Shown here piece by piece: positions 1 to 64,000 of a DNA stretch of 64,000 bases. Origin of the DNA: Rhodosorus marinus CCMP1338 (lineage: Eukaryota > Plantae > Rhodophyta); assembly GCA_029953675.1 (NCBI GenBank), contig JAMWBK010000008.1:1736001-1800000 (forward strand), in the 5' to 3' direction. Every line of letters starts with the position of its first letter. Within the stretch, counting starts at the first letter, position 1. The notes below the pieces were generated by a model. That model did no database searches. It worked only from the letters and a program-made list of their open reading frames with translations, and was not told where the DNA came from. The translations under genes and the position numbers were made by a program.

Positions 1-863
1 GCTGAAATGCTGCTTTGCTTTTAGACACGCGTCATCAGCGTCTTGTCTCTCGCTTCTCGGGGTAGTTAGCCTCAGAATAAACGTTAAGAAAAAATCGAGT
101 CGGAGAGCCTGGAAGGGTTTTCTTCAACACATGTCATCAGAGTCTTGTCTCTCGCTTCTCAGGGTAGTTAGGCTCTGAATAAACGTGAAGGAGATCATTG
201 TCTCTCGCTTCTCAGGGTAGTTAGGCTCTGAATAAACCAAAAGAAGATCATCATCGACCGGGAGGTGGAGTATGAGGTGCCCCTGCCGGTGGCAACGGCA
301 AATACTGAAGTGGCTGATGCCCCGGTGGTGCAACGGGTGTCGGACCTACTGGTCACTGATCTGAGTCCTCGTCGGAGTGAGTACTTCGACCTTTCTATCC
401 CTTGCCCTCACTCAGGCTGCCAGATCTGGTATACCTGCCAGCGTATGTCTGCTCGACGCCTAGGCGCTGCAGCTCGGTCAATGCGGCAACTCAAGGAATC
501 CCAGTACGCTGCGGCTATGTTAGACTCTACGTTTCGCGATTCGGCATTGTCCTAGCGGTTTGTTCCACTCGTCACAGAGTACTTACGTTTAGTTGATAGT
601 GTAGGTTCTCGTTGGCTTCGTGGCCTCTTTCGGACCAACCCAGGTCGTTTTGATAGCCTGCTCACGGCGCGTTATCAGCGTCTTCTCTCTCGCTTCTCAG
701 GGTATAACTACCCTGAGAAGCGAGAGAGAAGACGCTGATAGGCTCTGAATAAACGGATCGAGATGTCCTTGACCTTGTGGCGCTACAACGCTGCTTTACT
801 GTTGGACGCGCGTCAGCGGCGTCTTGTTTCTCGCTTGTCCGGGTAGTTTGGCTCTGAATAAAC
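1..863 (+). repeat. Five tandem copies of the family A 3' end (consensus GTCTTGTCTCTCGCTTCTCAGGGTAGTTAGGCTCTGAATAAAC)
   Basis: Copies at 1-81, 133-184, 198-237, ~262-754 (RLE remnant with internal deletion) and ~762-863. Each ends in AATAAAC; 5' truncation points differ. Confidence 0.9.
673..740. repeat. Perfect 32-bp inverted repeat (fold-back) with 4-nt loop inside a retroelement 3' end
   Basis: 673-704 TATCAGCGTCTTCTCTCTCGCTTCTCAGGGTA is the exact reverse complement of 709-740; the loop is TAAC. Confidence 0.95.
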
Positions 864-1133
864 GGATCATCAAAGACCCCGAGGGGTCTCATGATCACCA
901 TCATCCGTGGTCTCCCTGCTGGACACCGACCGGACACCGACCCGCATTTATTTGGATGAGTAACTCGTGGGTAGTAATGAAGGCTGGAGCGTCCCGAACC
1001 TAATCTTAGAAATGTATTGAACAAGTTTCGCAAAAACCAAAGGGTTTTAAGGCAGTGATGCTTCTCGCTCGCTTCGTCGTTTTTTTCCTCGAGCCCCGGG
1101 CCGCCTTGACAGCCTCCTCACGGAGCTATAACT

Positions 1134-1256
1134 AGGCTTGTGCGAAGTGGGTTGGGTTTTTCGCAGTTTTCCGACCCAGAAGTGGTTAAACCCGCGAAAA
1201 CAGGGGGATTGAGGGGGATATACAGCCAAAAACCCGACCCACTGTGCACAACCCTA
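1134..1256. mobile_element. ~123-bp hAT-like MITE
   Basis: Imperfect ~28-bp terminal inverted repeats (AGGCTTGTGCGAAGTGGGTTGGGTTTTT / AAAAACCCGACCCACTGTGCACAACCCTA) and an 8-bp target duplication with one mismatch (CTATAACT 1126-1133, CTAAAACT 1257-1264). Removing the insert restores the codon spacing of the host retroelement (T-E-L-x-L-S-L). Confidence 0.75.
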
Positions 1257-1659
1257 CTAAAACTGAGTCTCTAGCGTTCGAATGCTGACTTGTTGTTCGA
1301 CGCGCGTCATCATCATCAGCGTCTCCCCTTTCCGCTCCTCATGGTAGATAGTCTCTGAATAAATTGTTGTTGTTGAACTAAGATATTGCGAGGTAGCTCT
1401 GTCTTGTACGACCTCTCTTTTCGCTTTTTACTAAAGGAGACCGGGCTTAGCTACCAACACTCGCGCATCAAGAATTTTTTTCGTCGCGCAAGCGACTTTT
1501 CCCCGGTTTGCACGCTTCCCTCCCTAGTTCTAAGTTCCTTTTCACGCCTTGCGTAGCTCTTCAGGCTATGCTAATAAAGCCCTACCTAGTTCCTAGTGCC
1601 TTTTAACGGTTTGCGTAGCGCTGTAGGCTATGCTAATTAAGCCAATAAAGCCCAGTACC

Positions 1660-2500
1660 ACCGCCGCTCGCCTCCGCGGCATGGGAGGCCATCTTTCACA
1701 TTTGTGGTTAACGGCCCTGCCGTCATCACTGGGTCACCGTCTGGATGCCTTCCAGTTTCGCTCTGCCGCACGGATTTACCTGGGTTTGCCACAAGCTCCG
1801 TGGCATTTCTAATCGGCCGTCTTTCTGTTAGGGATGTGAGAGTTGGATCGATGCTTGTAGTTACCATTTCTTAGGTTCATGCGGACTGTTGAGAGGTCTT
1901 CGTACGAGGCGTCACACTCGCTTCAAGTACATTCTCAGCGAATGTCTGACTCGGGTAGGGCATACGGTTGAGGTGGAATCGGAACTACCCAGATCGGTCT
2001 CAGATAGGGCACCGCCCCGCTGTATCGCAGATCTCCTCGTCTCCGATGCTGCCGCCAGACGCTCAGCATATGTTGACCTCGCGATTACATGCCCTGTGGC
2101 AAGCGCCCATCTCACGGCTGCCGCCCGTCGCCGGGGAGCAGCTGCTTCGGCCCTTCGGCACGTGAAGGAACGACGGTATGCTGAGAGTATGGCCAGCCTG
2201 CCTCGCGCTGAGGGTCGCTCCCACTGGTTCCAGCCTTTCATTGTGCAAAGCTTTGGCCACGTGGAGAAGTCGGGTTTGGAGTGGTTGCGGAAATGTTTCA
2301 CTGAGCATCCTGTTGAATACTTGGAACTTTTGCGGCGCTTAAGTGTCTCTCTGTGGCGATATTCGAGCAGCATGCTTGCCGAGGCGCGCCATCGGCGCCT
2401 GGGTTTGCACGCTTCCCTACCTAGTTCTTAGTTCCTTTTAACGGTTTGCGTAGCGCTGGAGGCTATGCTAATAAAGCCAGTAGGCTAATAAAGCCTAGTT
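1660..2500 (+). pseudogene. Family B RLE retrotransposon 3' part: CCHC zinc finger plus restriction-like endonuclease, degenerate
   Basis: ARLRGMGG..SHLWLTALP...F..A.R..LG.P, then C*GC..IDA..YHF..SC, then RTRRH...VEVE...RCIADLLV...AYVDLAITCP...KERRY...FQPFIVQSFG...LSVSLWR. The 3' UTR with AATAAAGCC is also present at 1505-1655. Confidence 0.85.
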
Positions 2501-3059
2501 GAACTAGTTTTGCGTTAACTTCTTGCCTTGCAAGCCTCCAATCGGGAAGGCTGATTCCCAGTAACCGTGAACGCTTTACTAAAGAACTCCCTATTGGAGC
2601 TGCCAAGAGGGAATATTCTTTAAAAAACACCGAACGGGTTGTGTGGCTACGCTCTACTAGAGGGCGATCTCATAGTTCCCTTCGTCAATTCGGCGTCCCT
2701 GCTTAGCAAGCAGTGAGTGCACCTTTCCTATGAGTGCTCACTGTTTGAGCGTCGCATGTGCTTCGCTGACTTGTGTGGATTGGTGCTGCAAGTGTAGAGT
2801 CACCTCTTTTAAGAATTGATCAGCTTTGTTTTCCCATCCTCAGGAACGCCTCCACGCAGGAGGGCACAAAAACGTCGTCATTGTGGGCTCCATCGCGTCC
2901 CGGCATTTCAACTCCTTAAACTACTCCGCCTTGTGGGCAGTGTTCCCTGTCTCCCAGGACGCGTTGATTAGGTAGGTCTTTTGCAGCGGCGAGCTCGCTT
3001 AACCCAAAAACTCGCCCTAGACAACGTGCGGTTCATCGCGAGACCCTCCGCTCAGGGTT

Positions 3060-3662
3060 GTGGGGTCTGGGCTAGATGGCGCTGTAACGTTGCCCTAGTT
3101 TTGGAGGCGCGCTCTCTACGCCCTTCCTAGAATAGTTCATTCAGGGACCTTTGCCTCGGGCTAAACCGATTCCGAATATTTGGAAGGCCCTGGTGGTCCC
3201 CGAAGAGTTGCTGATCTTGTCGTTTAGGACGCGGACGGCCCCCGCAAACAAGTACGAAGACCTGACTCCTCCTTGTCCGCTTACCTACGTTACTCGTCTT
3301 CTTCGACTCGAGAGCATCATGCCCCGCCGCAAGGAGATGGTGACCAGGAGGTCCTTACGAACGTCACCACCCTGCAGTCGACTGGGTCACACCGGCTCCT
3401 TCCACTTGTTATTGAGATACTTGGATTCATTAAGAGCTCATGTATGGTCACCTACGGACCTGGTTTTGACTGGATAGCTTTTGTTCTCTTTGGCTTCATG
3501 GCCTGCTTCCAGGCGACCCGGCTCGTCTTGATGGCCTCCTCACGAAGCATCAAGACGAGCCGGTCTTTGATATACTGGCGCTCCAATTCTGCTTCATTGT
3601 TGGACGGGCATCCATCATCAGCTTGTTCTTTCAGGCTTCTCGGGGTAGTTGGCCTCTGAATA
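3060..3662 (+). pseudogene. Two further RLE retroelement 3' fragments (family C end at 3060-3175; degenerate RLE at 3183-3662)
   Basis: WRCNVALVLEARSLRPS* at ~3076-3130; RRVADLVV*D...KYEDLTPPCP...LLPLVIE...YWRSNSASLL in shifted frames, ending GGTAGTTGGCCTCTGAATA. Confidence 0.75.
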
Positions 3663-3989
3663 GAATGTCTCTCCTGAGCAAAAACAAGTCGTAAAAAAGT
3701 ATCTAAAAGTATTTTAAAAATATTAAAATGTGCTGCAGGTATTGCAAAAGTACAGAAAATTATAGAAATGCGAAGCTGGAATTGGAGCATCGACTTTAGC
3801 TCGTCGAGTGGAGAGCTCATCGACTGCCACCCTTGGCAATTGAGCGTTGTGGTTTCATGAATTCCGTTGGTTTCCTGTTGGGTTCGCGAAGTGTTCCGCG
3901 AGCACCCCGACTGGCTTTGCTCGTTGTTAACCCGCTTGAGTTTCCTGTGGTGGCGTATGCAGGCTGCTTTTGTGGGAGAAATGCGTGAC

Positions 3990-4290
3990 CTTCATCAGGT
4001 TATTCAGAGCCTAACTTTCCTGGAAGCGAGAGACCAGACGCTGATGACGCGCGTCTACAAACAAAGCAGCATTTCAGCGCCACAGGGTCAAAAAAAGCTC
4101 CGTGAGCAGACTATCTAGACGCCCTGGGTCGTTGCGAAAGATACCTCGCAGCCAGCGAGAACCTACACTATCTATCAAGCCAAAGCATGCAATAATGAGG
4201 GGGACAAACCGATATGTCGAGAGGTAGGGTTTGACATCGCTGCCGCGTACTGCAATTCTGTAACGTGACCTTCGAGTTCAGTAGTCTTTT
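3990..4290 (-). pseudogene. Family A RLE 3' fragment on the minus strand, tail-to-tail with a family D fragment (3790-3990, +)
   Basis: The reverse complement reads DSVGSRWLRGIFRNDPGRLDSLLTELFLTLWR*NAALFVDARHQRLVSRF and matches 590-700 and 1-81. Confidence 0.85.
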
Positions 4291-4899
4291 TTTCCGCTCG
4301 GGCTTTTTGTTGGTCCCTGAATCAACACATTGATTCATTCAATTTTTTGCGCCCTAACTTTTCCACTTGCAAATTCGGTCCACCTTTACTTCAAACTAAC
4401 TCAACAGCCAAGCCTGCTAGAAAGGTTTTATAGCTGTTTGCTACTGCTTGTAGAAGCCCACTCGAGAGGTAAGAATGTAGAGAACACGACTAGTTACTAC
4501 TGTATTGGCCCTTTCTTGACCTGTTCAGCCGTTCAGGGTTCTTTTCTTGATTTCGTCGATCGTTCACAACTCTCTTATTTCTCTTCGGACAGCTTCCCTT
4601 GCTCTCATCCCGGTGGAAAGTTAGCTTCCCACTTTGCGGACTCGCAACAAACTACATAAATTTCCGCTTTGGCTGTCCTTTTCTTTACCTGAGCGGAGCG
4701 GAGCCGACAATGTCCCAGTTTCCCAAGCACCTGTATTTACGAAACCTTCATTAAAAATTCCATGTCCTCTGATGGAGACGATCGATAGCCCTCACGACCG
4801 CTTAAACACTTTGACTACTTACGCTCCGGCGGGTGAAGTGGGCGTGCTGGCTTTAATACGAGGTCTTGGTGAGGGGCGCCTACCTAGGACTCTCTCCTC

Positions 4900-5640
4900 A
4901 CAACTGGGTGACGTTTTCGAGGAGTTAACGACAGCCATGCGGTAGTGTACTGCGCTCGAAAGCGGTACCCAGCCTCGTTATAGCTCCTGGGAGGAGGTTC
5001 TCTCGCCTTTTTGAGTCCTGCTATCGCAGACTCTCGGGCCGCGGCGAGTTTGGACAACGTCGAGACGGTTGCTGGGAACGGCGCCTGTGTTACTGAAGCC
5101 GAACCTATTGTCGACACTGACGGTATCCTTGCCGCAGACGACGGCGAAGCCCCTGCCTGTTTCGCAGACTACCTAAATGACGAACGCCGAGTGGCTGACC
5201 TCGTGGTGACCTGTAACGATAGCCGCCGTACGACGTACGTTGATCTTGCTGCATCTGATGCTCAGGCTAGTCGTTTTTGCCGGCTGCGGGAGAGCGACGT
5301 GGATTTTTGCGGCTGTCAGTGCGAGACGTCGCGAAGAGTTGAAATAGGCGGGGCCTTTTGTCTTCCCCAGGCATTTGTGCTTCGGATCTAGCTCATCGCC
5401 TGGTACCTCTGGTCGTTGAGTGCTTTGGGTTTTTGGATTACGTTAGCTCCCTTCGGCTTCGGGAGTGTTCGGCGAACGCCCTGACCGTCTCTCCTCGTTG
5501 GTCACCCGTTTAAGTTTCTTGCTGTGGCGTATGAACGCTGCTACTATGATGTTGGAAGCGCGCGACCTTAGCCGCGAGTTGTCGTCTCTTTTCCCTCCAG
5601 GTTTTTGCTTTCAGTCTCCGATTAAACAGCTTCAAATTCA
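4900..5640 (+). pseudogene. Family D RLE retroelement 3' fragment
   Basis: ORF 5011-5391 contains RRVADLVV...TYVDLA; 5465-5695 contains PDRLSSLVTRLSFLLWRMNAA..LEAR, which matches 3867-3990. Confidence 0.75.
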
Positions 5641-5989
5641 GCATAATTCTAGTCTTGTCCAGTTTCTTTGGGGCATAAAATCTAAAAGCGTCTAGATCTA
5701 CGGAGATAATATATCTTATCCGCTCTAAACAGGCTTTTGGAATTATTCTGGTAAACTTTTCCACATAGAAGGAGTATTCAAGGGTCAGTTGGCCTTAGAT
5801 ATAGTTTAAAAGGAATAAAAAGTAGGAAAAGTGGGGTTACATGGTTAAAATTCTGTGGCGGATAGCACACAGCATGGGAGTCAACCTCAACACCCCCAGG
5901 CCCACTTGGATCGGGAACTGTTCTATGATGATGTGCCAAGAAGGCAATACATCGTATACTCGAGTGAGTACACTCGTCCCACGGGATTC

Positions 5990-6230
5990 GTTCGTGAATC
6001 GGACAGAAGTTCTCAGGATCAGCAATGAACAATTGTGATTGGGGAACTATTACACCTACGCTTGGTGTGCTGCCCACGTCACATGCGGAGGTAGCCGTGT
6101 CTCAGAGGACAGAAGCTCTCAGGATCTTCAACGACGCAATTGTATTTTCGAGTTTCCGGGTGACAGCATGCAGCTTCGATCCTACGGTTGGTGTCCGACC
6201 CATGTCGCATGCGGAGGCAACTAGCCGAGT
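5990..6230. repeat. Degenerate internal duplication (offsets 105-125 bp), possibly a decayed repeat-protein gene
   Basis: GGACAGAAG(T/C)TCTCAGGATC at 6002 and 6107; CCTACG(C/G)TTGGTGT..CCCA(C/T)GTC(A/G)CATGCGGAGG at 6056 and 6181. Confidence 0.7.
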
Positions 6231-6316
6231 CACAGAGGGGGGTGGCGCTATGGAAATTCATTCAAGGAAACTAACACGGATGTACGGCAACAGGAATGAG
6301 CGTGTTCGTGGGGTGA

Positions 6317-6493
6317 GAGAGCCATTAAAAGCTTGAAACATCAGCCAGTTTATAAAGTTGAGCTCCGCTAGTCAGAAAATTAATCTAATCAGGGCCCCCG
6401 CCTCATTGAGAGCCATTAAAAACTCGAAACATCAGCCAATTTATAAAAGTTGAGCAAGTCACAAAAATTAATCTAATGAGGGGGGGGAACCTC
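6317..6493. repeat. 91-bp-period tandem direct repeat, 2 copies
   Basis: GAGAGCCATTAAAA...GAAACATCAGCCA.TTTATAAA(A)GTTGAGC...AAAATTAATCTAAT starts at 6317 and again at 6408. Confidence 0.85.
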
Positions 6494-6603
6494 AACGCGC
6501 GAGGGTGCCCATTATCCATGGCCTCGTGCAAACCGAACGTATACTTGCTAATCCCGTGACGCTTAGTCGCTGAGATTGGATCTGAGGGAACCACAGAAAG
6601 TAT

Positions 6604-8127
6604 CTAGAAATAGATTTTGTCTGCTCCTGGACCGCCGTTGATGATATCTCGACCACCACCTAGGGTAATCGTGTCGTCTCCATCCCCGCCAAAAATCGTG
6701 TCATCTCCAGAACCAGTGACGATCTTATCATCACCCTCACCTCCTTCAACCCTATTGTCCCCAACCCTGTCCGTTAGTTTGTCTTCACCGTCCCCGCCAT
6801 AGATTTTGTCATCTCCTTCGCCACCGAAGACATCATCATTTCCATCATCTGCGTAAATAACGTCATCTCCACCACCACCGTAAATCTCGTCCTTGCCCTC
6901 TCCACCCCTAACCCTGTCCACTCCATCTCCTCCTCTGATGTAGTCATTGCCGCTGCCACCGAACAGCTGATCGTAGGTATATCCTGTGTCCCGAACGTCA
7001 TCATCGCCCGCACCGCCTTGTGTGAGATCACGGCCACTTCCAGTTTCAATGATGTCATTACCATCGCCACCATAGTTTGTATTGTTTCCCTCTGAATCCT
7101 TGATCGTGTCATTTCCAGCACCCCCGAAGTTCTTATCGTGCCGTGCGCCACCATCCAAAAAGTCCTTACCACCACCACCATCTAGGGTATCATTATTACC
7201 CTCGCCGAAGAGGGAATCTGAACCGGATTCCCCAAATATCTGGTCCTGACCATCACCACCGTAAACAATGTCGTCTCCGGAACCGGCGTAGATCTTATCG
7301 TTTCCACCAAGGCCATAGATGAGATCGTTGCCGTTGGTCCCGAAGATAATATCATCGCCTTCGGTTCCGAAGATGATGTTGTCGATTCCCGGAGGAAGCG
7401 ATGGTTGTGGCTTTCGAGTCGGTGATGGTGACGGAGCCTGAGTCTCTTGCGGAGGGTCAGTAGGATTTGGATTATACGATGTTACAGTGGGAGTCGAGGT
7501 AGGTTCAGGATCGGGAGGATCCCGGCAGGCAAATGGAACCTGACAAAATAGTTCGTCGTCACCATATGTTCTACACTCTTTGCTGGAGGTGTAGAGCCAA
7601 ACCGTCGCTCCTGTAGGGCTTGACGCCTTCACCTGCACTGCAAGGCACGCTTTCGTATTGCAGCAGCTGTCAGCAGTCGACTCGATCTGATCTAAACAGA
7701 TGAGAATTCGATCTTTCGGGTCTGGATCGGTCCTTACATCCTTCACGATCGGATGGCGGGCACTGCCCGTGGGAAGATTGTTGTTGCAATTCTCGAAGAC
7801 CCCGGCATATATCTTCTTAATTTTTATGCCATCGTTAGTTTGGAAGTTCACCCGCATACAAGGACCACGACCAGAGACTTCCCTGTTAACAATGCAATAA
7901 GAGCCCAGCTTTACATTATTTTCATCTCTCAAACTCGAACACAAGGCGCGGAAGAATCCGTTATGCGCAGAACGGTAACCAGCCCTGCACGTCCCCGCAA
8001 CGCCTCTCGCTGCAGGAAGCAACTCAACATCCGTCGAATCCAGGCCTCTCTGTCCTACCCTGACACCTCCAATATCAGAAACGCCCAACACCAAAACCAC
8101 AACAAACGCAACACCCAACTTGCCCAT
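6604..8127 (-). CDS. Secreted protein: signal peptide, 12-Cys domain, Pro/Thr linker and ~28 RTX/hemolysin-type Ca2+-binding nonapeptide repeats
   Basis: 507-aa intronless ORF. Hydrophobic N-terminus MGKLGVAFVVVLVLGVS; uninterrupted GGxGxDxUx repeats (e.g. GGDGQDQIF, GGAGNDTIK, GGEGDDKIY) run to the C-terminus. Confidence 0.9.
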   Translation of the reverse strand: MGKLGVAFVVVLVLGVSDIGGVRVGQRGLDSTDVELLPAARGVAGTCRAGYRSAHNGFFRALCSSLRDENNVKLGSYCIVNREVSGRGPCMRVNFQTNDGIKIKKIYAGVFENCNNNLPTGSARHPIVKDVRTDPDPKDRILICLDQIESTADSCCNTKACLAVQVKASSPTGATVWLYTSSKECRTYGDDELFCQVPFACRDPPDPEPTSTPTVTSYNPNPTDPPQETQAPSPSPTRKPQPSLPPGIDNIIFGTEGDDIIFGTNGNDLIYGLGGNDKIYAGSGDDIVYGGDGQDQIFGESGSDSLFGEGNNDTLDGGGGKDFLDGGARHDKNFGGAGNDTIKDSEGNNTNYGGDGNDIIETGSGRDLTQGGAGDDDVRDTGYTYDQLFGGSGNDYIRGGDGVDRVRGGEGKDEIYGGGGDDVIYADDGNDDVFGGEGDDKIYGGDGEDKLTDRVGDNRVEGGEGDDKIVTGSGDDTIFGGDGDDTITLGGGRDIINGGPGADKIYF

Positions 8128-11100
8128 TTTTTTTCCTGCTCTCCAACCCCCACCCCGTTCAGTTTACCGAAAACAAAGGCTACACCAAGTCCAAGCTAAT
8201 CAATCCTCCTTCCCCATAGACCTCGATCCACTTCATAAACAACCCAAAAAAAGGATGACATGCTCTGCTTCCTTCAGAACAAAAAAAAAAAAACAGAATG
8301 GGACCAATCGCGTTTTTTCCAACAACCTACACCAACCTCCCCTCTCCCTCCTCTCCCTCCTCCCCACCCCACCACTTCCCAATGATATGCCCTTTCAGCC
8401 TACCAGAAACAAAAACCAGACAATTCATCTAGCCGTTCATCCTCCTAATAGAGTGCGAGACACACACACACAACACATACACACACTCATTCACGCTCAG
8501 TCACACTCACGGACACTCTCACAAGTACAAAACATCCATATCACACACCCCCATAATTCAGCTCCTAAATCCTCACTTGCCAACTCTCAATCCCTCAAAA
8601 AAATTACACCAAAAAAAACCGGTGCGAACTTACAAAATTTCCATCCCCCCCTAAAAAAAAACTCACCAGACACACACCTCGAAAACCAGCTGCCTGAGCG
8701 CCCAGGCACTTTCAATGTCCACGTAGTTGTTTCCGTCCCATGATCACTAATGCCGTTAAAAATCCTTTTTTTTAAAACTCGATCATGTATATCATATATA
8801 AAACAAGTTTTGGTTTGGAAAATATTCATAAAATCAATATGACCTTTCTTTCGAAAGGAAAACGCGGGCTTTTTTGCTTTGGTAGTTGTTTTTTTTCATA
8901 GATTAGAATGGGGTTGTATGGAAAGTTCGGTGTCATCCGTTGATGGAATTAGTCTAATCTTTGTCTTTCTCTTTTTCCCGTTTGAGAAAAGAAAATTTTT
9001 TTTCGGTACGTATTTATTTTTTTGGCATTGTGATGATGATTATGGCGGCGAACACCAAAACAAGAAAATATAGGGTGGTTGGATTTCTTTCCGACGACCC
9101 ACCCCCTTTTTCCTTTTTTTTCCAACTCTTTAAATGGTTGCGAACAACGATTGTATTAAATAGTCTCCAGAATACACATTCTAGATAAGGCCGGGTATAA
9201 TTTAGGGGGAACAAGGGGAGGAGGGTGGAGGGGGGTAAAATCAGATGATCCCACCCTCCTCCCCTTTTTCCTTTTAAATTATACGCGGGGACACACACAC
9301 ACTCATGCAACACTCACACAAAAGTCGACTCTGCTTAGCAAAATGTCTTGAAATATTAGAACAAGTTTAATAATTCAGCTTGCAGTAGGAAAGGACAGGA
9401 AAGGACTCTTTTTTGTTGCCTTTGTACCATTTTTGGGGGGAAAAAATGGAATAGAGCGAGGATTGTATCCTCGGGCAACGAGATTTAGAAAAACGTAATA
9501 AAAACGAATACGAATCAGATGTAAAAATGCACGAAAAAAATACCTTATATACTGAAGTAGTTCAGTTGCATGACAAACATCGAAAAAAAAAATGATAAAT
9601 CCGCCGAGCATGAATATGAGTACTAATTTCAAGTATTCTGTTGTTTCCGTTGTTTTTGCTTGACAACTATTGGTTGACAATGGATCTCCGCATCTGCCAT
9701 TCTTTTTTGTTGTATTAATGCTCACACATTTTTTTGGATCCCAGTATATGATCTTTTTCTTTTCGAAATAGAGAGTATTTCTTCCTGTTTTCTACGTACA
9801 TCAAATGGTATTTTTTTTTCCTTCTATGTGGAACAACCTGGCTGGGAATCGTTGTGGGTCAGGATTGGGCCCAGCCGACTTTGTGACGCTGTCTAGAGGA
9901 CGTCAGCTGACGCTTTGCATTCTAACGAGGCTTTCTTGTGCTCGGAATATTTCTCCATCTGTTTTGAGGGCGGAAGATTTGGTTGCACGTTGATGTATCG
10001 GCTATCAGCGGGGTTTTGCTTTTGAGCGCTGTTGGTTGACTACAACCCGGCAAGCAAGATCGACATCCACCCACGAAAAACGGACGATAAACACTAGATG
10101 CGGAACCCCGCCCCGCTCGTTGAAACAAGTCGATTTGCCAGAATTACAACAAGCGCCGAGCGAAAAGCTCACCACCTAGTTTGTAAACTTTGGTTCAAGG
10201 CCAGCTCTCTCCACTTTCATCAAGCCTCTCACTGCACAAGGGGCTGTGTTGTTTTCTTGTTCCATATCATCATCACTCTTTGGAAGCGATTCTGTGGCCG
10301 TGCATATTGGTGCAAGCAGTAATTGAAATCCTGTTTTCGCAATGTGGGAAAATGCCGAGTCGCAATTTTACCATCTGGCGCATTCGTTTCTAGAACGTTG
10401 CTACCGGGAGAAAGAAGAGGACGGTCCCAAACAGAAAGCATGGCAAGAAAAAAAGAGGGTAAATCGCGGCAAATAGGCCGACGCTTTGCGTTGAAACGCG
10501 GCGCTCTTTGACCAAACTAACTACATCTACCAAAGCGCTCCAGAAAAAGTAGTTGTAAGACTTGCTCTAGAACCGGATACTCCGAAAGACTCTTGATCCT
10601 AAGCCAGTAGTTGGCCGAGGAGAGGAGATGTAGAAAAAACAACTAAACCACAACGCTATTTTCCTTTTTGTTTGTTTTGAAGAAGGGAGAGCATCGATTT
10701 TTTTTTTTTTCATAGGCTCTTACGATGCCGCTCGGCTCCAGCTCGTGGGAAAGGAGAGACTACTCCAGCCACAACTGACTTGTGGCATGAGGGACCGTTT
10801 CACTTTTAGGTTTCTGGCGGCAGGATGGTTTGCTCCTCTTTTTTTTTTCTATAACATTTTTTTCACGTATCTGAACACGAGAGAGTGGTTCCTTGGCCCG
10901 TTAAAACTGGCCCGATAAAAAGTGGATGATCTATTTATCAATTTCGCTTTTTTAGGATGAGCAAACTTTCAGAGAAATCCGCCATTTTCATGCCGTGAAA
11001 ATCTACGCCTTGGTCGAGCTCAGAAAATACTTAGACTTAGGAACTATCTATTCTGCTTTTCCAGTACTAAGCCCTGCTAGAGCCGCAAAATTGCGCCAGT

Positions 11101-11769
11101 TAAATATTTAGTACCGATTGGATAGATAGCAAAGTCATTGGTCGAGCAGTTCCGGAGGGCTAGTTCTGTCGTGGGGTTTTTCTTCCAAAACATGGATCTG
11201 GGTCCGTGTCGTCGGCTTACAACTAACAAAACTGGCCTTTTTCGCCCATCGCGAAACCATTTTTTCTTCCTATTTTCCTTAAACTAGAGAAAAATCGTGT
11301 TTAATTTGTTGTGAAGATGCCTAAATTTCTAAACACAGGTTTGCCGCTCCCTGTCAATGACAGTTTTATCAGCGATCTCAGCTCACACAGCAGTGGAGTA
11401 CGTGCCCAGCAGTGATTCATCATCGCCTACTCCTGAACATGAAAAATAAAAAAAAGCAAAAAATTATACTAGTGGTAATATTCAAGAATAATCTCAAAGA
11501 AAGAAAAAGAGAAAAGTACTGGGTTGTGAATATTCTTAGAATTCCCGACGAACTCTCTCTTTCTTTCTTTTTTTCATTTTGTTGCTATTTTTTCCTTTTA
11601 TTTCTGTAACACTACGTTCAGAAGCCGCTTTAAGCGTAGGTAATATTTATCAAAACATGGAAAAATAATGAGCACTCGCTGTCGAGTTCGTTCCATGACA
11701 AAAGGCTTAGGAGAACGACTCCAAAAATGGAGGCCTTCCATCATGAGATTGTTCCTACGAGCCTGACGA

Positions 11770-11860
11770 AACTATACCAGTGAGAAGCGAGAAATAAGAC
11801 GCTGATGACGTATGTCCCAACAGTAAAGTGCTAGCGTTGGAACGGCAGAGTGTGGGACCC
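11770..11860 (-). mobile_element. Solo family A RLE 3' end
   Basis: GAGAAGCGAGAAATAAGACGCTGATGACG is the reverse complement of the family A consensus seen at 1-81. Confidence 0.7.
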
Positions 11861-12329
11861 GCCTCGCCACCTTCGGTGCCTTGTGAAAACTGCTTACTTT
11901 TCAATAAGCCCTTTTTGAGAGTCGTATGAGCAGATTAGACACTCAACGATACCCAAGATGGCAAACACCAATTTGTCCCGTTGGAACGGAAAAAGCGGGA
12001 CAAAAAAACTCAAAACGTACTATCGCAGAATTATCCTCAGCCAGCCAATCATTCCAAAGGTTAGACTTTCATGTCCCGAAAACAAGAACATGTTTTCAAC
12101 TTTGACAAATCCAGGAGACATTGCTGGGTGACGTTGATATTGGTCAGCTGGCTGGGAGTCCCAACAGACTACTACTCCTATTCTCCAAGTTGCTATTGTC
12201 TAATTGCTGATCGAAAAGGCACATACGTTCAGTTTTATCTTGTTTTGAGGTTTGTAAAGGCGGCGTGAATTTGTACACTAAGCTGATTAAGCAAAGGGGA
12301 GGGTGGATTTCTATGCGAAGCGTCACTAT

Positions 12330-13910
12330 CCTCGTCCTTAGGGGGCCGATTGGAATGATGGTGGATGTTTCCACGGACCGGATTTCTGCTTTTGGCCGCG
12401 CCTGCTATTCCGTAGGCTCCCTCCCAACTGAGGAATTAGTTCCGTTTACTTTTGTATCGGACTTCGTTACGCTCGGATAGGGGTGATCTCACGCCGTTTT
12501 CATACAGTTACTGATGATATCCTCCATATCATGTCCGCAGAGTACTCCTCCTGGCATCGAAGAAAAAGTTATAGGCCGGCACTACCTTCCCCCACGTGAT
12601 GCGCCTGGTAGTATGCAGGCTAGTCTCGTCCTTGGGGCGCAATTGGAATGATGGTCCATGTTTCCCCGGACTGGATTTCTGCTTGCGTCTGCTATTACTT
12701 AGGCTCCCAACTGAGGAATTCATTCCGTTTACTTCTGTAACGCACTGCGTTACGCTCGCATAGGGGTGACCTCACAGCCTTTTTTATAGAGTCACTGATG
12801 ATATCCAAGGCCATGCCCGCAGAGTGCTCACCCTGGCATGATCGAAGACTAGCTATATTCCGGCAATGTCTTCCCCACGGGATGTGGGCTGCCTTTCGCA
12901 GATTCCCAACTGAAGAATTGCGTTTACTTCTGTAACAAACTGGGTTGTGCTCGGATAAGGGTGACCTCATGCCATCATAATAGATTCAATGATGATATCC
13001 TAGGCCATGTCAGTGCATCCACCTGCCATGATCATAGACTAAGTATATCCCGACAATGTCTTCACCACGCGACTTCTGCTTGCGCCCGCTGTTGCGCGGG
13101 CTCTCCATCTGTCCAGTTCCGTTTACTCCTGTAATGGACTGCGCATTCTCGGACAGGCGCGACCTCATGTCGTTTTTCATAGAGTCAATGGTGACCTAGG
13201 CCGTGTCTGCAGAGTGCTCCCCCTGACATGATCGAATGCGACTGGATCCCGACAATTGATTGTAGATTCGGGTATTGGAGCGGTACCAAGTTGTTAGTGC
13301 AACTCCCTACTCTATTAGACGTCTCGGTTTGTTTTTAACCATCATCGGTTTAGATCCGAGCCCAAGTTCCCCGAATGAGGTACTCTAGGAAGGCGTGCTG
13401 ATTGCCCCTCTGGACCGTCAGCCCGTGACGGTCCCTACTCACCGTCGAACCCACATTGTGAGTAATCCTTTCATTGCTGTCTAGCAAGTTGGCCTTTTTT
13501 GTGATTGCGGCTTTGAACCAGTAGCGATGGGATCAAATACACCATGCAGATTGAGTCTTATCTGATCTCATTGTGCAAGTTCTGTTTTCGGTCCTCCCCC
13601 CCTGTCGATTTGCTGGACGAATACTTTCGAAATCCTTGTCCTTTGCGGAGGAGCCAAACTCCCGAGTGGGGTTGCGGCTTCTGGAGAGTAGGGAAAGAGC
13701 CATTCATCTCCCCCTCGAGGCGCAACCGGAATACTTGTGAGTGTTTCCACGAAATTTCTGCTTTTGCTTGCCGTCAGGCAGGTTCCCAACTGAGGAATTC
13801 CGTTTCCTCCTGTACCGGGCTGCTGGATGCTTGGAGAGCACTCCATGCCGTTTTCACTGAGTCAACAATGATATCCTAGGTCATGTCCGGAGCGTGCCCC
13901 GGCTAACATG
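12330..13910. repeat. Five degenerate ~170-290-bp repeat units
   Basis: Shared cores TCCCAACTGA(G/A)GAATT..CCGTTTACT.CTGTA and GATGATATCC.AGGCCATG.CCGCAGAGTGCTC..CCTGGCATGATCGA at ~12420, ~12705, ~12903, ~13110 and ~13783. Confidence 0.85.
13340..13400 (-). mobile_element. Family C RLE 3'-end remnant
   Basis: ATCGGTTTAGATCCGAGCCCAAGTTCCCCGAATGAGGTACTCTAGGAAGG matches the reverse complement of 3120-3175 and also matches 17085-17125; a similar remnant lies at 16320-16355. Confidence 0.7.
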
Positions 13911-13944
13911 ATCTAAAAAAAGATAACGGGAGGCTCTAATTCGG

Positions 13945-14070
13945 TTGTTCAGCGGAATTACGGCGGAGCCTGAAGAACCCATGAGCGTAAATGAAGCTAT
14001 GGAGAGTGGTCTTGCCCCCGAATGGCGAGAAGCCATGGATGAAGAAGTGAAATCACTATTGTCCCTCATC
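13945..14070 (+). mobile_element. Ty1/Copia RT N-terminal fragment
   Basis: EPMSVNEAM...PEWREAMDEEVKSL is the canonical Copia pre-RT motif EP.S..EA....W..AM.EE..SL. Confidence 0.8.
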
Positions 14071-14199
14071 GGTCAGGCCCGTGCTTCATCGGATTTAATT
14101 CCTTATCCGTTAATCGCGCTTCTTCAGCAGTCTTTTCTGAGCCTATCTCGTCCAGGAACTCATCGTCCTCGTTTTATTCCTCGTGATGGGTCAAATGTT

Positions 14200-15560
14200 C
14201 CACTACAGCATCGGTGATAGGACTCCTTTGAAGACCTTTACATCGGAACACCTTGGGGTTGATCTTCGCATCCCTCATATATGTAATTTCCCCAGTCTCA
14301 ACCTGAACATCGTAATTGCCGCATGCTCCAAGCCCTCTTCACAATCATTCGCAAAGCGCCTCTGCAACTGTGCTTGTGCACCCAAATGCTTCACGTAATC
14401 ACTGGTCTGCTCCAAAAGATGCATAACGAGATCGCTCTTCATCTCCTCGAGGTATTTCATATACTCTTCCTCATCATTCTCCTTGAGAGCCTTGAACGGG
14501 TCCTGCTCGAGTACTTTTCCGTTTGGAATTCCTGGCGCATCTCCTTTTTGGCTACCGCGTCGATGCCAGTTGAAGCTGCCTTCACAACTTCCTCTCGCTT
14601 TCCGCGCTACTCCGGCGTTTCACCGGTTTCATGTTTCCGTACGTTCGCACGTTTACACCGGCGGAGATCCGTCCGGTTCTTGAGGAGCTACACCGCGAGT
14701 TGGGATGCATTCGACCATAGCTTTGAGTTTCCGATCGAGAACGATTGATTTTCGTCTTGCTGCAGGCATTTTAATCAGCTTTGGGTGATTATCCACGTTC
14801 GATAATTGCTCAGTACTGTCTCAAGAACCCATTACTCACGTGCCTTTACGACCTCGACGTTTTTTTCAGGTTACGCAAAACATCGCCGTCAAGAATTTCC
14901 GCCAAATCTCCAATCTGGCGTAGCCACGGGCTCTCGCAGCAACGTTGAGATGGTTCGTTTTGACCAAAATTCGTCCATAGGCCCTTCAATCAGCCTGAGG
15001 TTCTCTTTGCGCTTTCTCTTGCACTTTTCCCTTCAGAACGAGGTATTTCTTAGTGACTCTGCCCAAGTTCAAGCTGGCCTGAATCCGATTGTTTTGCCAA
15101 CTAGTCCAACATTAAACAGTACTTCTTCACGTACTGACACATTCCGCCCTTGTCTGTTGTGCATCTGGTACATATCCTGGGGTTCAAAACGTCTCCGTCA
15201 GCACGCGCACAGCCTCAACGCCATCAACGACGACACGCCCGCAAGACTTAATGGTAAGCAATTTTCATCAGCCTTCTTCAGCTGCTGAAATACCTACAGA
15301 GTTTGCTGTAAAAGTCCACGTTCTCCCGCTCGTTTGAATCATCGGCAACATAAGCCCGGAGAATCTTATCAAAAGTTTCCAGTCAGTCCGTAGGCGTAGT
15401 CACGACCATAGTTCCAAGAAGATTGGCTCCGCCCTCAGTTGCGCGAACAATATCTACCAAAGTGTCCGGTAAACTACGATAGAGATTCGATCAAGTCCTA
15501 TTTCGCAAAGTACACCATTCTCAGTTTTCCGACTTCAACTTCTCCACGTTGCTGCAATAC
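14200..15560 (-). pseudogene. Decayed fragment of a SNF2/BRM-type chromatin remodeller (pre-HSA/HSA/post-HSA region)
   Basis: FKALKENDEEEY, then a 2-nt loss at ~14460, then MKYLEEMKSDLVMHLLEQTSDYVKHLG; this resembles Snf2/BRM R.ALK.NDEE.Y.KL....K..R...LL.QT..Y...L. Weaker upstream matches (ALRL...R, LIESL.SLPDTL). Several stops and frameshifts; no ATPase domain seen. Confidence 0.55.
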
Positions 15561-16469
15561 TTGTTGCTGTACTTTATGTCTCTGGAGTTGCGACGCGGCA
15601 CCATCGTCATCATGACGGCTACTAAGCTCTCCTTTTCATCGTCCAAGTAATAGCTGTTCAGTCTGTTGAAAAACCAAATCAGTCAATATTGTAAATGATT
15701 GACTTTATGGCTTCAGTCAGCACCGGAGTGGTGGTCGTTGAGCTGGTCGGGGGTGGTTTTCACTGTCACCGGGATGTACTGGGGTTACGTTAGGGGGGAA
15801 ACATAGTCCATGTTCTCCGCCTAGTACAATCATTGTCTCCTTCCTCCCGGTGGTCTTTGAGGCCTTGCTTCACGCGAGTTCGTGGACTCTATGGGTCCAG
15901 TTGACTGCTAGCATCATGATCAATTGCGCACTTCAAACCTCTGCTTCCTGTTCTTCGCCTTGTTACAAGCAGGTAGACAAGACTTTCCTTTGCCAAGGAC
16001 TTCCTCCAACTCTTAACCTTCTGTACCACCCAGTCGCGTCCTCCTTCAGTATCTCTCGTCAAAACCTTCCAATCTCCAACGGGATAATTCAAAGCAGCTT
16101 AAGCTGTTTACAGCATGAGCTGGGCTCATAATCTTTTGGATTGTCTGTTTATTCATCTGAGTGTAACACTTTATCAACGTCATCCAGAGGACTTCATCTT
16201 CATCTCTCACTCGTTGACAGAACAACAACGCGAGTTCAATCCTGCCCTAAGTAGTCCCGAAGCCATGCCTCGTCTGAACTCTCAATGACCCCAAAGATCT
16301 TGATAGCAGACAGATCGGTCTAATCGGACGCTAACGTCCCTGAACGAGGTAAGCTAGAAAGATACGGTTATCTAGTCTGACCTTCCAACTAGGCTAGGGA
16401 CGCAATTCAGCACAGGCCATCACCCGAGGTGCGCCCTATCGGGTTGGGCCACGACACCAAGACTGCGCG

Positions 16470-16600
16470 TCGGTTTGTCCGTACGACCCTTGGTGATTGC
16501 CTCCGTGAAGAAATCGGGAATCATTTCATCCGTGCCGAGATATCTGAGTTGCGCTTCACCCGATACGTGACGCAACATCCTGCAGTGTCCAGTAGTCGCC
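16470..16600 (-). mobile_element. Ty1/Copia RNase H C-terminal fragment
   Basis: GEAQLRYLGTDEMIPDFFTEAITKGRTDKPTRSLGV resembles G.I.L.Y..T.EM.AD.LTK.L......R..LG. Confidence 0.7.
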
Positions 16601-16714
16601 CAACCTAGGCACGAATCACTATCAGTAAATGGGACTTTTTGGACGCAAGTTTGGCGGGTGATGAGGAAACCAGGAAGAGCACCTCGTGACCGTTGGTGAT
16701 GATCGGTGGATCAG

Positions 16715-17330
16715 TAAACCTTGTTTCGAGGGCCAACAACCCCGAGAAGGGAGCACTGCACTCGACGAAAGCAACGAGCCTCAAGGATAAGGGCGGCTGA
16801 ACGCCGCCACAGGGCTAGACTAAGCAGAAATTGGAAACGCGTGCAGAGATCAAGTTGATTCCCAAAGCGCGCACGGAACAGGAGAACTCCTGCACCGTCC
16901 ATGAACCAAAAGACTTCAACAAAAACCGGGACGCGAGTGACTTATCGTTCATGGAGACAACGATCTGCTGCTCAGTCAACCGCGGAAGCCGAATACCAAA
17001 GCACTGGGTGCTAACCCAAAGATGGATTCGAGAGTTTATAGAAGGTTTTTGGGGTAGTTCTTGGCTTAGTTGATCCATCGTTTTAATCGGAGGCTAAGAT
17101 CCCTGAATGAGGTACTCTAGGAAGGGCGTAGGGGGCGAGCCTCCAAAACTAGGGCAGCATTACAGCGCCAGAGGGTCAAACTTAAAGTAGCCAGTCGGGT
17201 GGGAGCATCAGGGCATTCCCGCAACCAAGCACCCCCAGCGCTATCTAAGAATCCAAAGATCTCTCTAACAAAATGGGACAAACCGATAAGCAGCGCAGAA
17301 TGCAAAGCCTCATCGTTGGAAAGCGCCTCC
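16715..17330 (-). mobile_element. Two tandem RLE retroelement 3' fragments on the minus strand
   Basis: LSLALWRRSAALILEAR (~16775-16825) and GFLDSAGGAWLREC.DAPTRLATLSLTLWRCNAALVLEARPLRPS* (17117-17250). Confidence 0.8.
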
Positions 17331-17333
17331 GGC

Positions 17334-17530
17334 GATGGATCAGTGCACGGATTCAAGCCACGGCTCGTAGAGGTTTTGCGCTGGAGCAAGGAATGGACTT
17401 TGAGCAAATCTTCCCCCCTACGGTGGATTTCTCCAGCGTGAGGTTAACTATTGACAATACTGGCGAGAAAATATGGAGCTGGTACAGATTGAATGTTACA
17501 CAACCGCGAACCCGGAACGCGGAGTTGCGT
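17334..17530 (+). mobile_element. Ty1/Copia RT core fragment (frameshifted)
   Basis: DGSVHGFKPRLV, then RGFALEQGMDFEQIFPPTVDFSSVRL...W...LNV; this resembles DGS..R.KARLVARGF.Q..G.DF.ETF.PV....S.R. Confidence 0.8.
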
Positions 17531-20500: not shown

Positions 20501-21162
20501 ATCTTTTTGGTTGTCCTTCCACATTCCGCCACGAAAAAGCCTCTACATTTGTTTTTCCCTTGCGCGAAAATATCACTTGCGTCTTTACCCTCGTCGACAA
20601 CATAGAAAAGTGGAATCCCCGTCAAGCCGAAAAAGGCTTCAAAATATCATAATTAAAGATGGAGTTCTCCTAATCAAGAACAAGATACCTATATTCTAAG
20701 AATTTGACTGCCGAGGAAGAATTTATTTGTTTAGACTAGAGTAGTTGTCCAGTGAATATCCCGAAAATTTTAAAAGTGACTGAATACATGTTTTTATTTT
20801 ATTATACAGTTTTCTGTGGGCAAGCGTCAGCCAGGCGGCTTAAGCAGAAAACTCATTGAGCGATGTGCACTCTGTGTTCGCAGACACCGCTTTTGAAAGG
20901 AGTGCTTCAAGAGTTGGGAGGGAAGTGAAGGGAAGAGCAGGGGCGGAGGGGGAGACTGTAGGGGATGAAACAGCGAGGTTTTGGAAAGGCGGAAAAAGCC
21001 GAATCGTTTCGAACCGCTACAGGGCGGCTTCTGTTTTGGAGGTTGAGGTAAGGGGCGAGTGCCGCTCGGGGTCGTGAGGGAAGGGTTGGGGGTGAGAGGG
21101 GAGGACCAGAATTGGGATTGAAAGTTTGTAGTTGGTTTGGTCTTGTAATTTTCTTCGTCAAG

Positions 21163-58399: not shown

Positions 58400-58560
58400 G
58401 GGTCCATCTCTTCTCGCTGGCTTCGTCATGTTTCTCGCCGTGCCCCCAAGCGTCTTGACAGCCTCCTCACGGGAATTGTCTCTGAATCTCTGGCGTTTGA
58501 ATGCTACTTTGTTGTTGGACGCGCGTCATCAGCGTTTCCCTTTCGGCCGCTAAGTGTAGA
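58400..58560 (+). mobile_element. Isolated family A-like RLE 3' fragment
   Basis: CTTGACAGCCTCCTCACGG...CTCTGGCGTTTGAATGCTACTTTGTTGTTGGACGCGCGTCATCAGCGT (SLNLWRLNATLLLDARHQR) matches 1105-1125 and 1266-1325. Confidence 0.75.
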
Positions 58561-63191: not shown

Positions 63192-64000
63192 ATGATGGAG
63201 GTTCAGAGTTCCTTTGATACCTCTGGTAGGAGGAATTCTGGCAACTCGAGAAGACCAGGGCGCCCGGCGACCTACATATTTGATCGTCCCGATGATGAGC
63301 TGACGGAGGAGGATCGCAAGTTGAAGAATGCGGTGTTGAAAAGGAGAAGTCGCCAGAATAGGTCATATCAGAAACGCAAGATGATGAAACTTGCGCAGAA
63401 GCAGGCAAACGGACAAGCTGTTGATTTCCTGACCGTGGCGGGTGCAAATGGAAGCGCAGCAGGCCCCGAGGATATCAATGAGGATGTTGACGAGGTGACG
63501 GCAGTTGATCTAGTTGATATGGTGTCAAGGGTGGAGACCCAGCCGGAGGTCGTGCCAACCTCAGAGGAGCTAGGGGAGGATCTCGAGGAGTGCGTGCTCA
63601 TGGCCGTGAAAGGTACAATGGATCGCAGTCTGAGCATTTCGCATTCTAGCGGTGTCAAGGATGTCCTCTTTGGAAGCCTGCGAGATCGCTTTGCGGAACT
63701 CCCTGGGGAAGGGCAAGGTGCGCTCCGTGCGCTTTCGGTGTTTCCGAGGGACTTTGACATGGCTTCGGCCGCCGCCGTGATGGGTCGAGGTAGCGGCGAT
63801 GACCTCTCCCAGGCGATCGACCTCATGCAGCCCTTGTTCACCTCCGGCTTTATTTCCTCCTCGAACGGGCGCTTCGAGCTGAACCAGGTGACCAAGCTCT
63901 TCCTTACTGAGGAAGTGCCCTTTGGCGGCGATACCTTAGTCACCGAAAGGCGGGATCCGTCAGTGTCCCGGTATATAGATCATTTCCAAAACTTGCTGAG
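63192..64000 (+). CDS. 5' part of a putative transcription regulator: GRP motif, basic helix and STAND-type winged-helix region (runs off the window)
   Basis: Open frame from ATG 63192 to the window end, absent from the ORF track because no stop is reached. RRPGRPATYIF, KLKNAVLKRRSRQNRSYQKRK, ALRALSVFPRDFDMASAAAV...RFEL. Confidence 0.8.
   Translation, partial: MMEVQSSFDTSGRRNSGNSRRPGRPATYIFDRPDDELTEEDRKLKNAVLKRRSRQNRSYQKRKMMKLAQKQANGQAVDFLTVAGANGSAAGPEDINEDVDEVTAVDLVDMVSRVETQPEVVPTSEELGEDLEECVLMAVKGTMDRSLSISHSSGVKDVLFGSLRDRFAELPGEGQGALRALSVFPRDFDMASAAAVMGRGSGDDLSQAIDLMQPLFTSGFISSSNGRFELNQVTKLFLTEEVPFGGDTLVTERRDPSVSRYIDHFQNLL

Follow-up and report, generated by a model that had tools for sequence, protein, structure and literature searches.

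An internal, gene-flanked island of stacked, 5'-truncated retrotransposon copies of predicted RLE type in the red alga Rhodosorus marinus

Retrotransposons without long terminal repeats (non-LTR retrotransposons) that bear a restriction-like endonuclease (RLE) include R2, R4/Dong, NeSL, CRE/SLACS/CZAR, Hero and Utopia, and the reverse transcriptase (RT) of R2 reportedly performs template jumping in vitro (work attributed to Bibillo and Eickbush). Telomeric arrays of non-LTR elements (HeT-A/TART/TAHRE in Drosophila, MoTeR in Magnaporthe and SART/TRAS in Bombyx) are located at chromosome termini or within telomere repeats and show uniform polarity. Several long interspersed nuclear elements (LINEs), such as CR1, L2, the I factor and Dong, carry 3' tails made of simple repeats or reiterated terminal motifs, not of poly(A). 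Zepp clusters consist of nested LINEs and were first read as telomeric, but were later found to be mostly internal, with one cluster per chromosome, and to be probably centromeric (PMC3446292); Zepp is classed as LINE/L1 (PMC11005252). Template switching has been described as the source of U6/L1 chimeras and of a tripartite chimera in Magnaporthe (PMC4476161, PMC2104539). Here, we describe a cluster of non-LTR retrotransposon copies at the left edge of a 64,000-nt stretch of DNA (the window) from the stylonematophycean red alga Rhodosorus marinus, together with a second, larger cluster on contig 13 of the same assembly. The window cluster is probably an internal, gene-flanked island of dead, 5'-truncated copies of RLE-type elements that was built by nesting, tail-directed integration and template jumps.

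The window corresponds to bases 1,736,001 (base 1) to 1,800,000 (base 64000) of JAMWBK010000008.1 (contig 8; 2,117,290 bp) in assembly GCA_029953675.1, and its RTX-repeat gene was located at record positions 1,742,604-1,744,127 of this contig by an exact protein match. Sequence to the left of base 1 was obtained from locus L002 (contig 8 record 1,732,604-1,754,127, reversed), which adds 3,397 nt; positions in this part are given as negative numbers. Overall, the sequence examined amounted to 67 kb on contig 8 and 44 kb on contig 13 (L001 and its extension L003). An exact-protein look-up with the open frame at 36308-37792 of the window yielded no record. The island measures about 8.3 kb and spans positions -2642 to 5640 (contig 8, about 1.7334-1.7416 Mb), so that positions 1-5700 represent its right-hand two thirds. 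It is not a chromosome end and extends none. The initial annotation had proposed a telomere system for the case that base 1 lies near the end of a contig or chromosome, but the two ends of contig 8 are 1.74 Mb and 0.38 Mb away. It had also suggested that long reads extending to the left be inspected for telomere repeats or further stacked ends: in the assembled sequence left of base 1, further stacked ends were found, mostly on the minus strand and followed by unrelated sequence, but no telomere-type repeats were detected in the window, L002 or the contig 13 region by telomere-motif and tandem-repeat searches. The published assembly comprises 13 large contigs, of which 12 carry a telomere on one end or both and 6 reach from telomere to telomere, with 15% repeats and with the telomere sequences at the contig ends (PMC10250338). 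Normal genes flank the island and directly abut the cluster, and the remaining window contains ordinary nuclear genes (ThiC in pieces, Der1, CAP, Hsp20 and an AMPK-CBM protein).

Within positions 1-5700, 13 plus-strand 3' ends were identified, which derive from at least four related families: A (82, 184, 237, 754, 863, 1364 and 3664), B (1581, 1643, 2478 and 2495), E (a degenerate end at about 3170) and C (5627). The minus strand contributes a single copy and one palindromic arm (697-739). In line with this result, the initial annotation had counted at least 12 plus-strand ends from about four families and one minus-strand copy. The 34-nt end of family A was matched four times and the 31-nt end of family B three times at up to 3 mismatches, with 0 matches in 100 shuffles in either case. 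The short copies are 17, 40, 52, 62, 77 and 98 nt long and are followed by the next copy mostly after 0-20 nt, once after about 50 nt, so that the description of some copies as very short and abutting their neighbour was accurate. The claim of a polar array stood for positions 1-5700, with a ratio of 13:1, but not beyond them: this ratio results from the place where the window starts, because the 2.6-kb left arm is mostly minus-strand, with minus-strand 3' ends at -2640, -2340 and -2167, two further minus-strand fragments, and plus-strand 3' ends at -2430, -929 and -816. The whole window cluster comprises 17 plus-strand and 7 minus-strand fragments (binomial p = 0.064), and four more fragments, three on the minus and one on the plus strand, lie in the window outside the cluster.

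The second cluster extends from about 809.9 kb to at least 842.8 kb (at least 33 kb) of the 1,106,935-bp contig 13 and is likewise internal; on the examined side, it is flanked by ubiquitin-conjugating-enzyme and DXP-synthase genes. Its 44 fragments (19 plus, 25 minus) are unpolarised. An internal window, with 3' ends scattered genome-wide and showing neither end enrichment nor orientation bias, had been named in the initial annotation as the picture opposed to a chromosome end, and most of this picture was found: the window is internal, fragments are scattered within it, and the second cluster is internal and unpolarised. The window cluster is older than the contig 13 cluster, because its A ends are more diverged and often read TAGGC instead of TAGCC.

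Head-to-tail junctions were defined as a complete 3' end followed, after up to 25 nt, by the 5'-truncated start of a copy in the same orientation. The window cluster contains 6 such junctions, compared with 0.65 expected under random placement, a number that was reached in 0 of 5000 simulations; the contig 13 cluster contains 4, compared with 0.53 expected (p = 6e-4). Head-to-tail stacking is real and exceeds chance about 8-9-fold in both of these independent clusters. For 3' ends with a neighbour within 60 nt, the neighbour lies in the same orientation in 9 cases and in the opposite orientation in 3 cases in the window cluster. Identity to a young reference varies between 74% and 97% among the copies of one stack, which is therefore the product of more than one event.

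Nesting is most evident for an older family-A host copy, H, whose two halves (-797..-527 and 256..754) adjoin each other in the reference (2428 to 2440). Between them lies a block of 782 nt that consists of the copies L (-526..82), S3 (133-184) and S4 (198-237), all in the orientation of H. The possibility that the short copies are mere 3' remainders of split hosts was considered and holds for H (256-754) only; for the short copies S1, S2, S3, S4, S5, B1 and B2, no 5' halves that match exist, and these copies are separate products. An A copy of 56 nt on contig 13 lies within an antisense A copy and has a 10-bp duplication, CACCATAATC, on its two sides; a B copy of 71 nt, likewise on contig 13, lies between repeats of the 14-mer AGTAAATCCATCCA, which starts just after the GCT of the resident's terminal motif. 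The flank of B2 in the window, AATAAAGCC, occupies the same GCT^A position in B1 and matches the terminus of B1 at 9/9 and that of B2 itself at 8/9 positions; alternatively, this repeat may be a reiterated terminal motif in the tail of B2. Judged by such flanks, some short copies are demonstrably true insertions with target-site duplications at or inside the terminal motif of a resident copy. Several short A copies begin at one internal TCATCAG, 51-56 nt from the end, a site resembling an (ATC)n tail, which suggests micro-homology at 5' joining.

The copies lack poly(A), as initially described, but they are not tail-less: they carry short simple-repeat tails. After the terminal ...CTCTGAATAAAC of family A come GGATC(ATC)n, (TGA)n, which reaches ten units in a copy on contig 13, or (TTG)4; the terminal ...GCTAATAAAGCC of family B is continued by reiterated AGTAAAACC-like units or (CCA)n, and the terminal ...CTCCGATTAAAC of family C by (CATT)n. 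In the contig 8 and contig 13 sequences examined, runs of at least 4 such units are all element tails, with the exception of a (CCA)4 at 7169 in the RTX-repeat gene. Folding predicts small hairpins, with loops of 5-7 nt, immediately in front of the terminal A-rich motif in families A, B and C. In one variant of B, a compensatory change (GCGUAGC/GCUAUGC to GCGUGGC/GCCACGC) was seen together with a significant folding z-score of -3.2, the other z-scores being about 0. Separately, contig 13 copies of family C that end in GATTGAAC (merged L003+L001 positions 12810-12857 and 35417) were seen to have homologous sequence on their downstream side, AAAGGCGTTTACTTCAAACC...GTGGTTT..CTGATGTCA...; the alternatives are that this subfamily reaches further in the 3' direction or that the same repeated target was struck twice.

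The order of predicted domains (RT, CCHC motif, restriction-like endonuclease) identifies the elements as RLE-type non-LTR retrotransposons, as the initial annotation had proposed. An RVT_1 domain was found in contig 13 copies of families C and A (E = 2e-11 and 3e-12, respectively) and in a near-full-length family-C element of 4.75 kb. The latter encodes a 477-aa N-terminal frame followed by RT, knuckle and predicted endonuclease, with a few frameshifts; no Pfam domain and no recognisable zinc-finger or Myb motif were found in the N-terminal frame. The RT is followed by a C-x2-C...H-x4-C knuckle and the motif ARTRRH, a region that aligns to residues 944-983 of the R2 protein 9nl2 (E = 7.6e-4), and then, in contig 13 copies, by ADLV...YVDL...KKIKY...GSRW. 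The same order of D...D, K..KY and RG.W, together with a CCHC/RH motif, has been described for the R2 endonuclease (PMC4838377). In an alignment of intact A, B and C copies, ADLV...(Y/C)(V/I)DL...K..(K/Q/R)Y...G..W is readable, the second D, the K and the Y being invariant. Pfam searches with the element frames of the window and with the endonuclease region gave no hit, and the domain identity came from the longer contig 13 copies; a profile search of the PDB with the A/B/C endonuclease alignment reached E = 0.21, weaker than with a single sequence. An apurinic-type endonuclease was not detected in the elements. The window itself contains C-terminal parts only, and the earlier statement that it lacks an RT domain was confirmed for the entire 64 kb by tblastn with the RT, middle and endonuclease segments of related copies (E <= 1e-3).

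The best named structural relatives of the RT are L1 ORF2p and R2, with similar scores, and the nearest RTs are about 35% identical; the CRE-like character given in the initial annotation is putative. Among 5.8 billion proteins, those related to the endonuclease domain all come from Rhodosorus. Relatives of the open frame at 1832-2428 comprise two MMETSP transcripts and the NCBI proteins NDN08_000222 and NDN08_000223, all from Rhodosorus marinus, and a profile homologue search yielded 13 proteins, all from Rhodosorus, those from NCBI all lying within the contig 13 cluster. The 33-nt family-A end had no matches when metagenome contigs from JGI were scanned. Element transcripts are present in two MMETSP strains (MMETSP0011 and MMETSP0315). 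A third stacked locus that is transcribed, L004 (JGI 3300017118 Ga0186320_102762, 2551 nt), comes from what is apparently a Rhodosorus transcript assembly; it contains 3' fragments of the E, C and B types, all pointing the same way, before it continues into an unrelated gene on the opposite strand. As far as these searches show, the families appear to be undescribed RLE-type retrotransposons of a stylonematophycean red alga.

The stack contains a complete copy of the U5 small nuclear RNA (snRNA), which matches RF00020 at 58.2 bits (gathering score 40) over model positions 1-117. Its 5' end lies 10 nt past the (TTG)4 tail of a diverged A-like copy and its 3' end 6 nt before B1; all three are on the plus strand, and the U5 sequence is intact and uninterrupted. 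Loop 1 reads GCUUUUUAC, compared with GCCUUUUAC in the model, a change that is consistent with a decaying copy but does not prove one. The U5 sequence is probably the middle piece of an A-like/U5/B chimera generated by template switching, and thus a retrocopy rather than a working gene, because both boundaries of the mature RNA coincide with element 3' ends. Two insertions bracketing a live U5 gene so exactly would be a coincidence and would remove its promoter. Reading of the sequence gave no target-site duplication flanking the whole chimera (1054-1652); RLE elements often make no such duplication, and its absence is thus weak evidence against a chimera. The rest of the window and the 44 kb examined on contig 13, with their 44 fragments, yielded neither another U5 nor any further Rfam gene, and U5 is therefore not a general target.

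The process proposed to underlie the island would start with target-primed reverse transcription of RLE elements, which would often abort after 40-100 nt and leave a short simple-repeat tail rather than poly(A). New copies would integrate in or beside the terminal motif or tail of a resident copy in the same orientation, giving rise to head-to-tail stacks; in this step, the terminal motif or tail of the RNA would probably pair with nicked DNA, directing priming and fixing the orientation. The block of L, S3 and S4 entered H by nested insertion. Finally, in the course of a single event, the RT may leave its RNA template and resume on the 3' end of a second RNA, which would yield concatemers, including the A-like/U5/B arrangement. 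The proposal of the initial annotation that elements target each other's 3' ends or form concatemers by template jumping is thus supported by the enriched junctions, the target-site duplications and the U5 fusion.

Several observations weigh against this interpretation. Where a fragment lies within 60 nt of a 3' end in the cluster on contig 13, it has the same orientation in 6 cases and the opposite one in 7; tail-directed integration is therefore a tendency and not a rule, and only the enrichment of junctions is claimed. The A-family stack of the window shows no clean target-site duplications. The pairs at 145-251 (53 bp x 2) and at contig 13 12810-12857 (47 bp x 2) can equally be read as tandem duplications, and the spacers at 83-132, 864-1053, 2496-2971, 3665-3813 and 4268-4852 are unexplained. 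An AlphaFold2 model of the B-family frame of the window (9-row alignment) had a predicted local distance difference test score (pLDDT) of 51.5 and a predicted template modelling score (pTM) of 0.27, and did not confirm an endonuclease fold. Any number or order given for the events behind the stack is conjectural.

By analogy with Zepp in Chlorella/Coccomyxa and the Zepp-like elements of Chlamydomonas, the clusters could be of the centromere type, with one nested LINE cluster per chromosome. Two internal clusters do lie on two chromosome-sized contigs (8.3 kb near 1.73 Mb of the 2.12-Mb contig 8, and at least 33 kb at 0.81-0.84 Mb of the 1.11-Mb contig 13), both with sizes in the 1.5-42 kb range of Zepp clusters (PMC3446292, PMC11005252). 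Even so, this reading seems unlikely, as only two loci were seen, genes abut the cluster, fragments also occur 6-11 kb and 53 kb away from it, and the third, transcribed stack is located elsewhere. Clusters present once per chromosome would point to the red-algal centromeres, which to our knowledge are poorly known outside Cyanidioschyzon. In a further step, the elements could prefer the terminal motif or tail of their own copies (with a family-B nick at GCT^AATAAAGCC and priming by the paired RNA tail) and thereby form self-propagating stacks, which would merge into a single nested cluster per chromosome, acting as the centromere or marking it. We consider this combination quite improbable; if true, it would represent a red-algal, RLE-type counterpart of Zepp.

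That the short stacked copies arose by local tandem duplication or rearrangement of a few insertions, through replication slippage or unequal exchange, is similarly improbable for the island as a whole. Such events are suggested by the two copies of the 53-bp unit at 145-251 (92% match), by the perfect 47-bp unit present twice at contig 13 12810-12857 with TTT microhomology, and by inverted duplications in the cluster, namely the palindrome at 673-740 and repeats of about 150 nt around -1350..-180. In the 53-bp pair, however, 4 of the 6 differences are crowded into the 7 nt that immediately follow AATAAAC, whereas the element part of 40 nt shows none, a distribution that does not match random decay of a duplicate. 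Moreover, B1 and B2 are closer to the long B copy (89.6% and 93.8%, respectively) than to each other (about 71-82%), the copies ending at 82 and -816 resemble the contig 13 consensus more than their neighbours, the stacks mix families and include a U5 copy, and the 56-nt copy with its 10-bp duplication lies inside an antisense copy. Local tandem duplication is a fair alternative for the pairs at 145-251 and contig 13 12810-12857 and fits poorly elsewhere.

Classical site-specific insertion into one host sequence, for instance an snRNA gene such as U5, is very unlikely. The U5 copy does lie inside the stack with element ends on both sides, and most RLE lineages are target-specific (PMC4640811), but no recurrent Rfam gene accompanies the copies in the window and the 44 kb of contig 13, their 3' flanks differ apart from the tails, insertions are found in coding parts of other copies, and the U5 copy is intact from end to end. 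A telomere-associated or telomere-extending array at a chromosome end, as formed by HeT-A/TART or MoTeR, would account for the 13:1 orientation inside 1-5700 and for the head-to-tail, severely 5'-truncated copies, but is extremely unlikely given that base 1 lies 1.736 Mb into a 2.117-Mb contig, that the arm to its left is mostly minus-strand and gives way to unrelated sequence, that telomere-type repeats are absent from the sequences searched while the assembly has its telomere sequences at contig ends (PMC10250338), and that the second, larger cluster is internal and unpolarised. An alga with chromosome ends built by retroelements would have been remarkable, and a false lead is thus removed. 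The loci provide genomic evidence for template switching by the RT (the U5 chimera) and for integration at resident 3' ends. The coordinates of all features are compiled in Table 1.

Table 1. Retrotransposon copies and associated features in the window (positions in nt from base 1; negative positions lie to the left of the window).
Feature	Position	Strand	Remarks
Family-A copy L, 3' end	1..82	+	starts at -526, about 608 nt in all; ends ...TAGCCTCAGAATAAAC; 87% identity to A reference 2332-2935
Spacer or tail after L	83..132	+	GTTAAGAAAAAATCGAG...; without a match in the remaining window or in contig 13
Family-A short copy S3, 52 nt	133..184	+	96% identity; 5' start at the TCATCAG where truncation recurs
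Family-A short copy S4, 40 nt	198..237	+	identical to S3 across 40 nt
Older family-A host copy H, 3' half	256..754	+	5' half at -797..-527; split by L+S3+S4
Perfect 32-nt palindrome, 4-nt loop	673..740		3' untranslated region (UTR) inverted duplication within H; 100% complementary
Family-A short copy S5, 98 nt	766..863	+	followed by tail GGATCATCA
Diverged A-like copy	1054..1375	+	ends AATAAA + (TTG)4 tail; about 135-bp insert at 1128-1262
Full-length U5 snRNA copy	1386..1498	+	RF00020
Family-B short copy B1, 77 nt	1505..1581	+	ends GCTAATAAAGCC
Family-B short copy B2, 62 nt	1582..1643	+	flanked by 9-nt AATAAAGCC at 1573-1581 and 1644-1652; within B1 terminal motif
Family-B copy, 819 nt	1660..2478	+	predicted endonuclease-domain open frame 1832-2428 (RH, D...D, K..RY motifs)
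Family-B micro-copy, 17 nt	2479..2495	+	AGTAGGCTAATAAAGCC
Family-E 3' fragment	2972..3170	+	...RCNVALVLEARSLRPS; 85% identity to copy at 17077-17170
Diverged A-like copy	3380..3664	+	ends GCCTCTGAATAGA; 5' limit approximate
C-like fragment	3814..3993	+	without the last approximately 56 nt; tail-to-tail with minus-strand A copy
Family-A copy	3998..4267	-	sole minus-strand copy in 1-5700
Family-C copy	4853..5627	+	frameshifted endonuclease region; ends CTCCGATTAAAC
Lone A-type fragment outside the cluster	11775..11853	-	
A-like 3' fragment	16730..16932	-	
Family-E 3' fragment	17080..17340	-	
Lone old A-like fragment	58400..58545	+	

Further observations concern the cluster itself and its surroundings. 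Outside the palindrome at 673-740, the copy that contains it shows only about 74% identity to the reference; the palindrome resembles the product of a snap-back or strand switch, or else is recent. The insert of about 135 bp at 1128-1262, which interrupts the A-like copy, carries the terminal inverted repeats CTAGGCTTGTGCGAAGTGGGTTGGGTTTTT ... AAAAACCCGACCCACTGTGCACAACCCTAC and looks like a miniature DNA transposon similar to a miniature inverted-repeat transposable element (MITE). To the left of the cluster, a large near-perfect palindrome with arms of about 170 nt is located around -3396..-3040 (L002 18128-21524 region). A 134-nt repeat present at 5691-5824 and 17569-17702 (72% identity), each time beside an element copy, may represent another repeat family or an extended element flank. 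Within the contig 13 island, L001 19148-19852 is a long perfect tandem array that encodes the nonapeptide AEPAAFVTG more than 20 times. The transposon island of the window is directly adjoined by a 507-aa gene (6607-8127, minus strand), annotated in the nuclear assembly of this red alga, which consists mostly of RTX-type calcium-binding nonapeptide repeats (Pfam HemolysinCabind, E = 8e-58, 12 stretches); such repeats are best known from bacterial proteins. Two large plus-strand open frames at 21052-23373 (774 aa) and 26526-28766 (747 aa) are paralogues at a distance of about 5 kb; their N-terminal parts have the conserved stretch ...VNV(L/I)TD...LTALDLKR(N/D)LR(K/N)G(N/E)RLFSYEH... in common, and neither frame gave a Pfam match. 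A tandem 283-bp unit (about 1.9 copies, 78% match) lies at 12331-12884, and a tRNA scan of window positions 1-20000 gave no tRNA.

Compared with other RLE-bearing elements, the Rhodosorus elements share the order of RT, CCHC, RH and putative D...D, K..KY endonuclease motifs, frequent 5' truncation and the absence of poly(A), and are likewise predicted to form a small hairpin before the 3' terminus, as expected where an RT recognises its own 3' UTR. They differ in that no ribosomal DNA, spliced-leader, snRNA or microsatellite host target was found; a spliced-leader RNA or telomere repeats as insertion target were absent from the window, L001 and L003. With CR1, L2, the I factor and Dong, the copies have microsatellite-like or reiterated-motif tails in common, whereas their units, (ATC)n or (GAT)n, (CCA)n or AGTAAAACC-like, and (CATT)n, differ among sister families. 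The U6/L1 and Magnaporthe chimeras likewise join a full-length small RNA at its 3' side to the 5'-truncated 3' end of a LINE in the same orientation, and the tripartite Magnaporthe chimera (PMC2104539) has a similar three-part layout; the present case, a single example, involves U5 and the RT of a putative RLE element in a red alga, with a further element 3' end upstream of U5. Like HeT-A/TART/TAHRE, MoTeR and SART/TRAS, the Rhodosorus island contains head-to-tail runs of 5'-truncated non-LTR copies, but it is internal, has two arms of opposite orientation and is devoid of telomere repeats. Similar to Zepp, the nearest precedent among algae, and to Zepp-like clusters, finally, the Rhodosorus clusters are made of nested, 5'-truncated LINE copies, measure from kilobases to tens of kilobases and are located internally in a small algal genome; Zepp, however, is an L1-type element of green algae, whereas the elements described here are of predicted RLE type and reside in a red alga.

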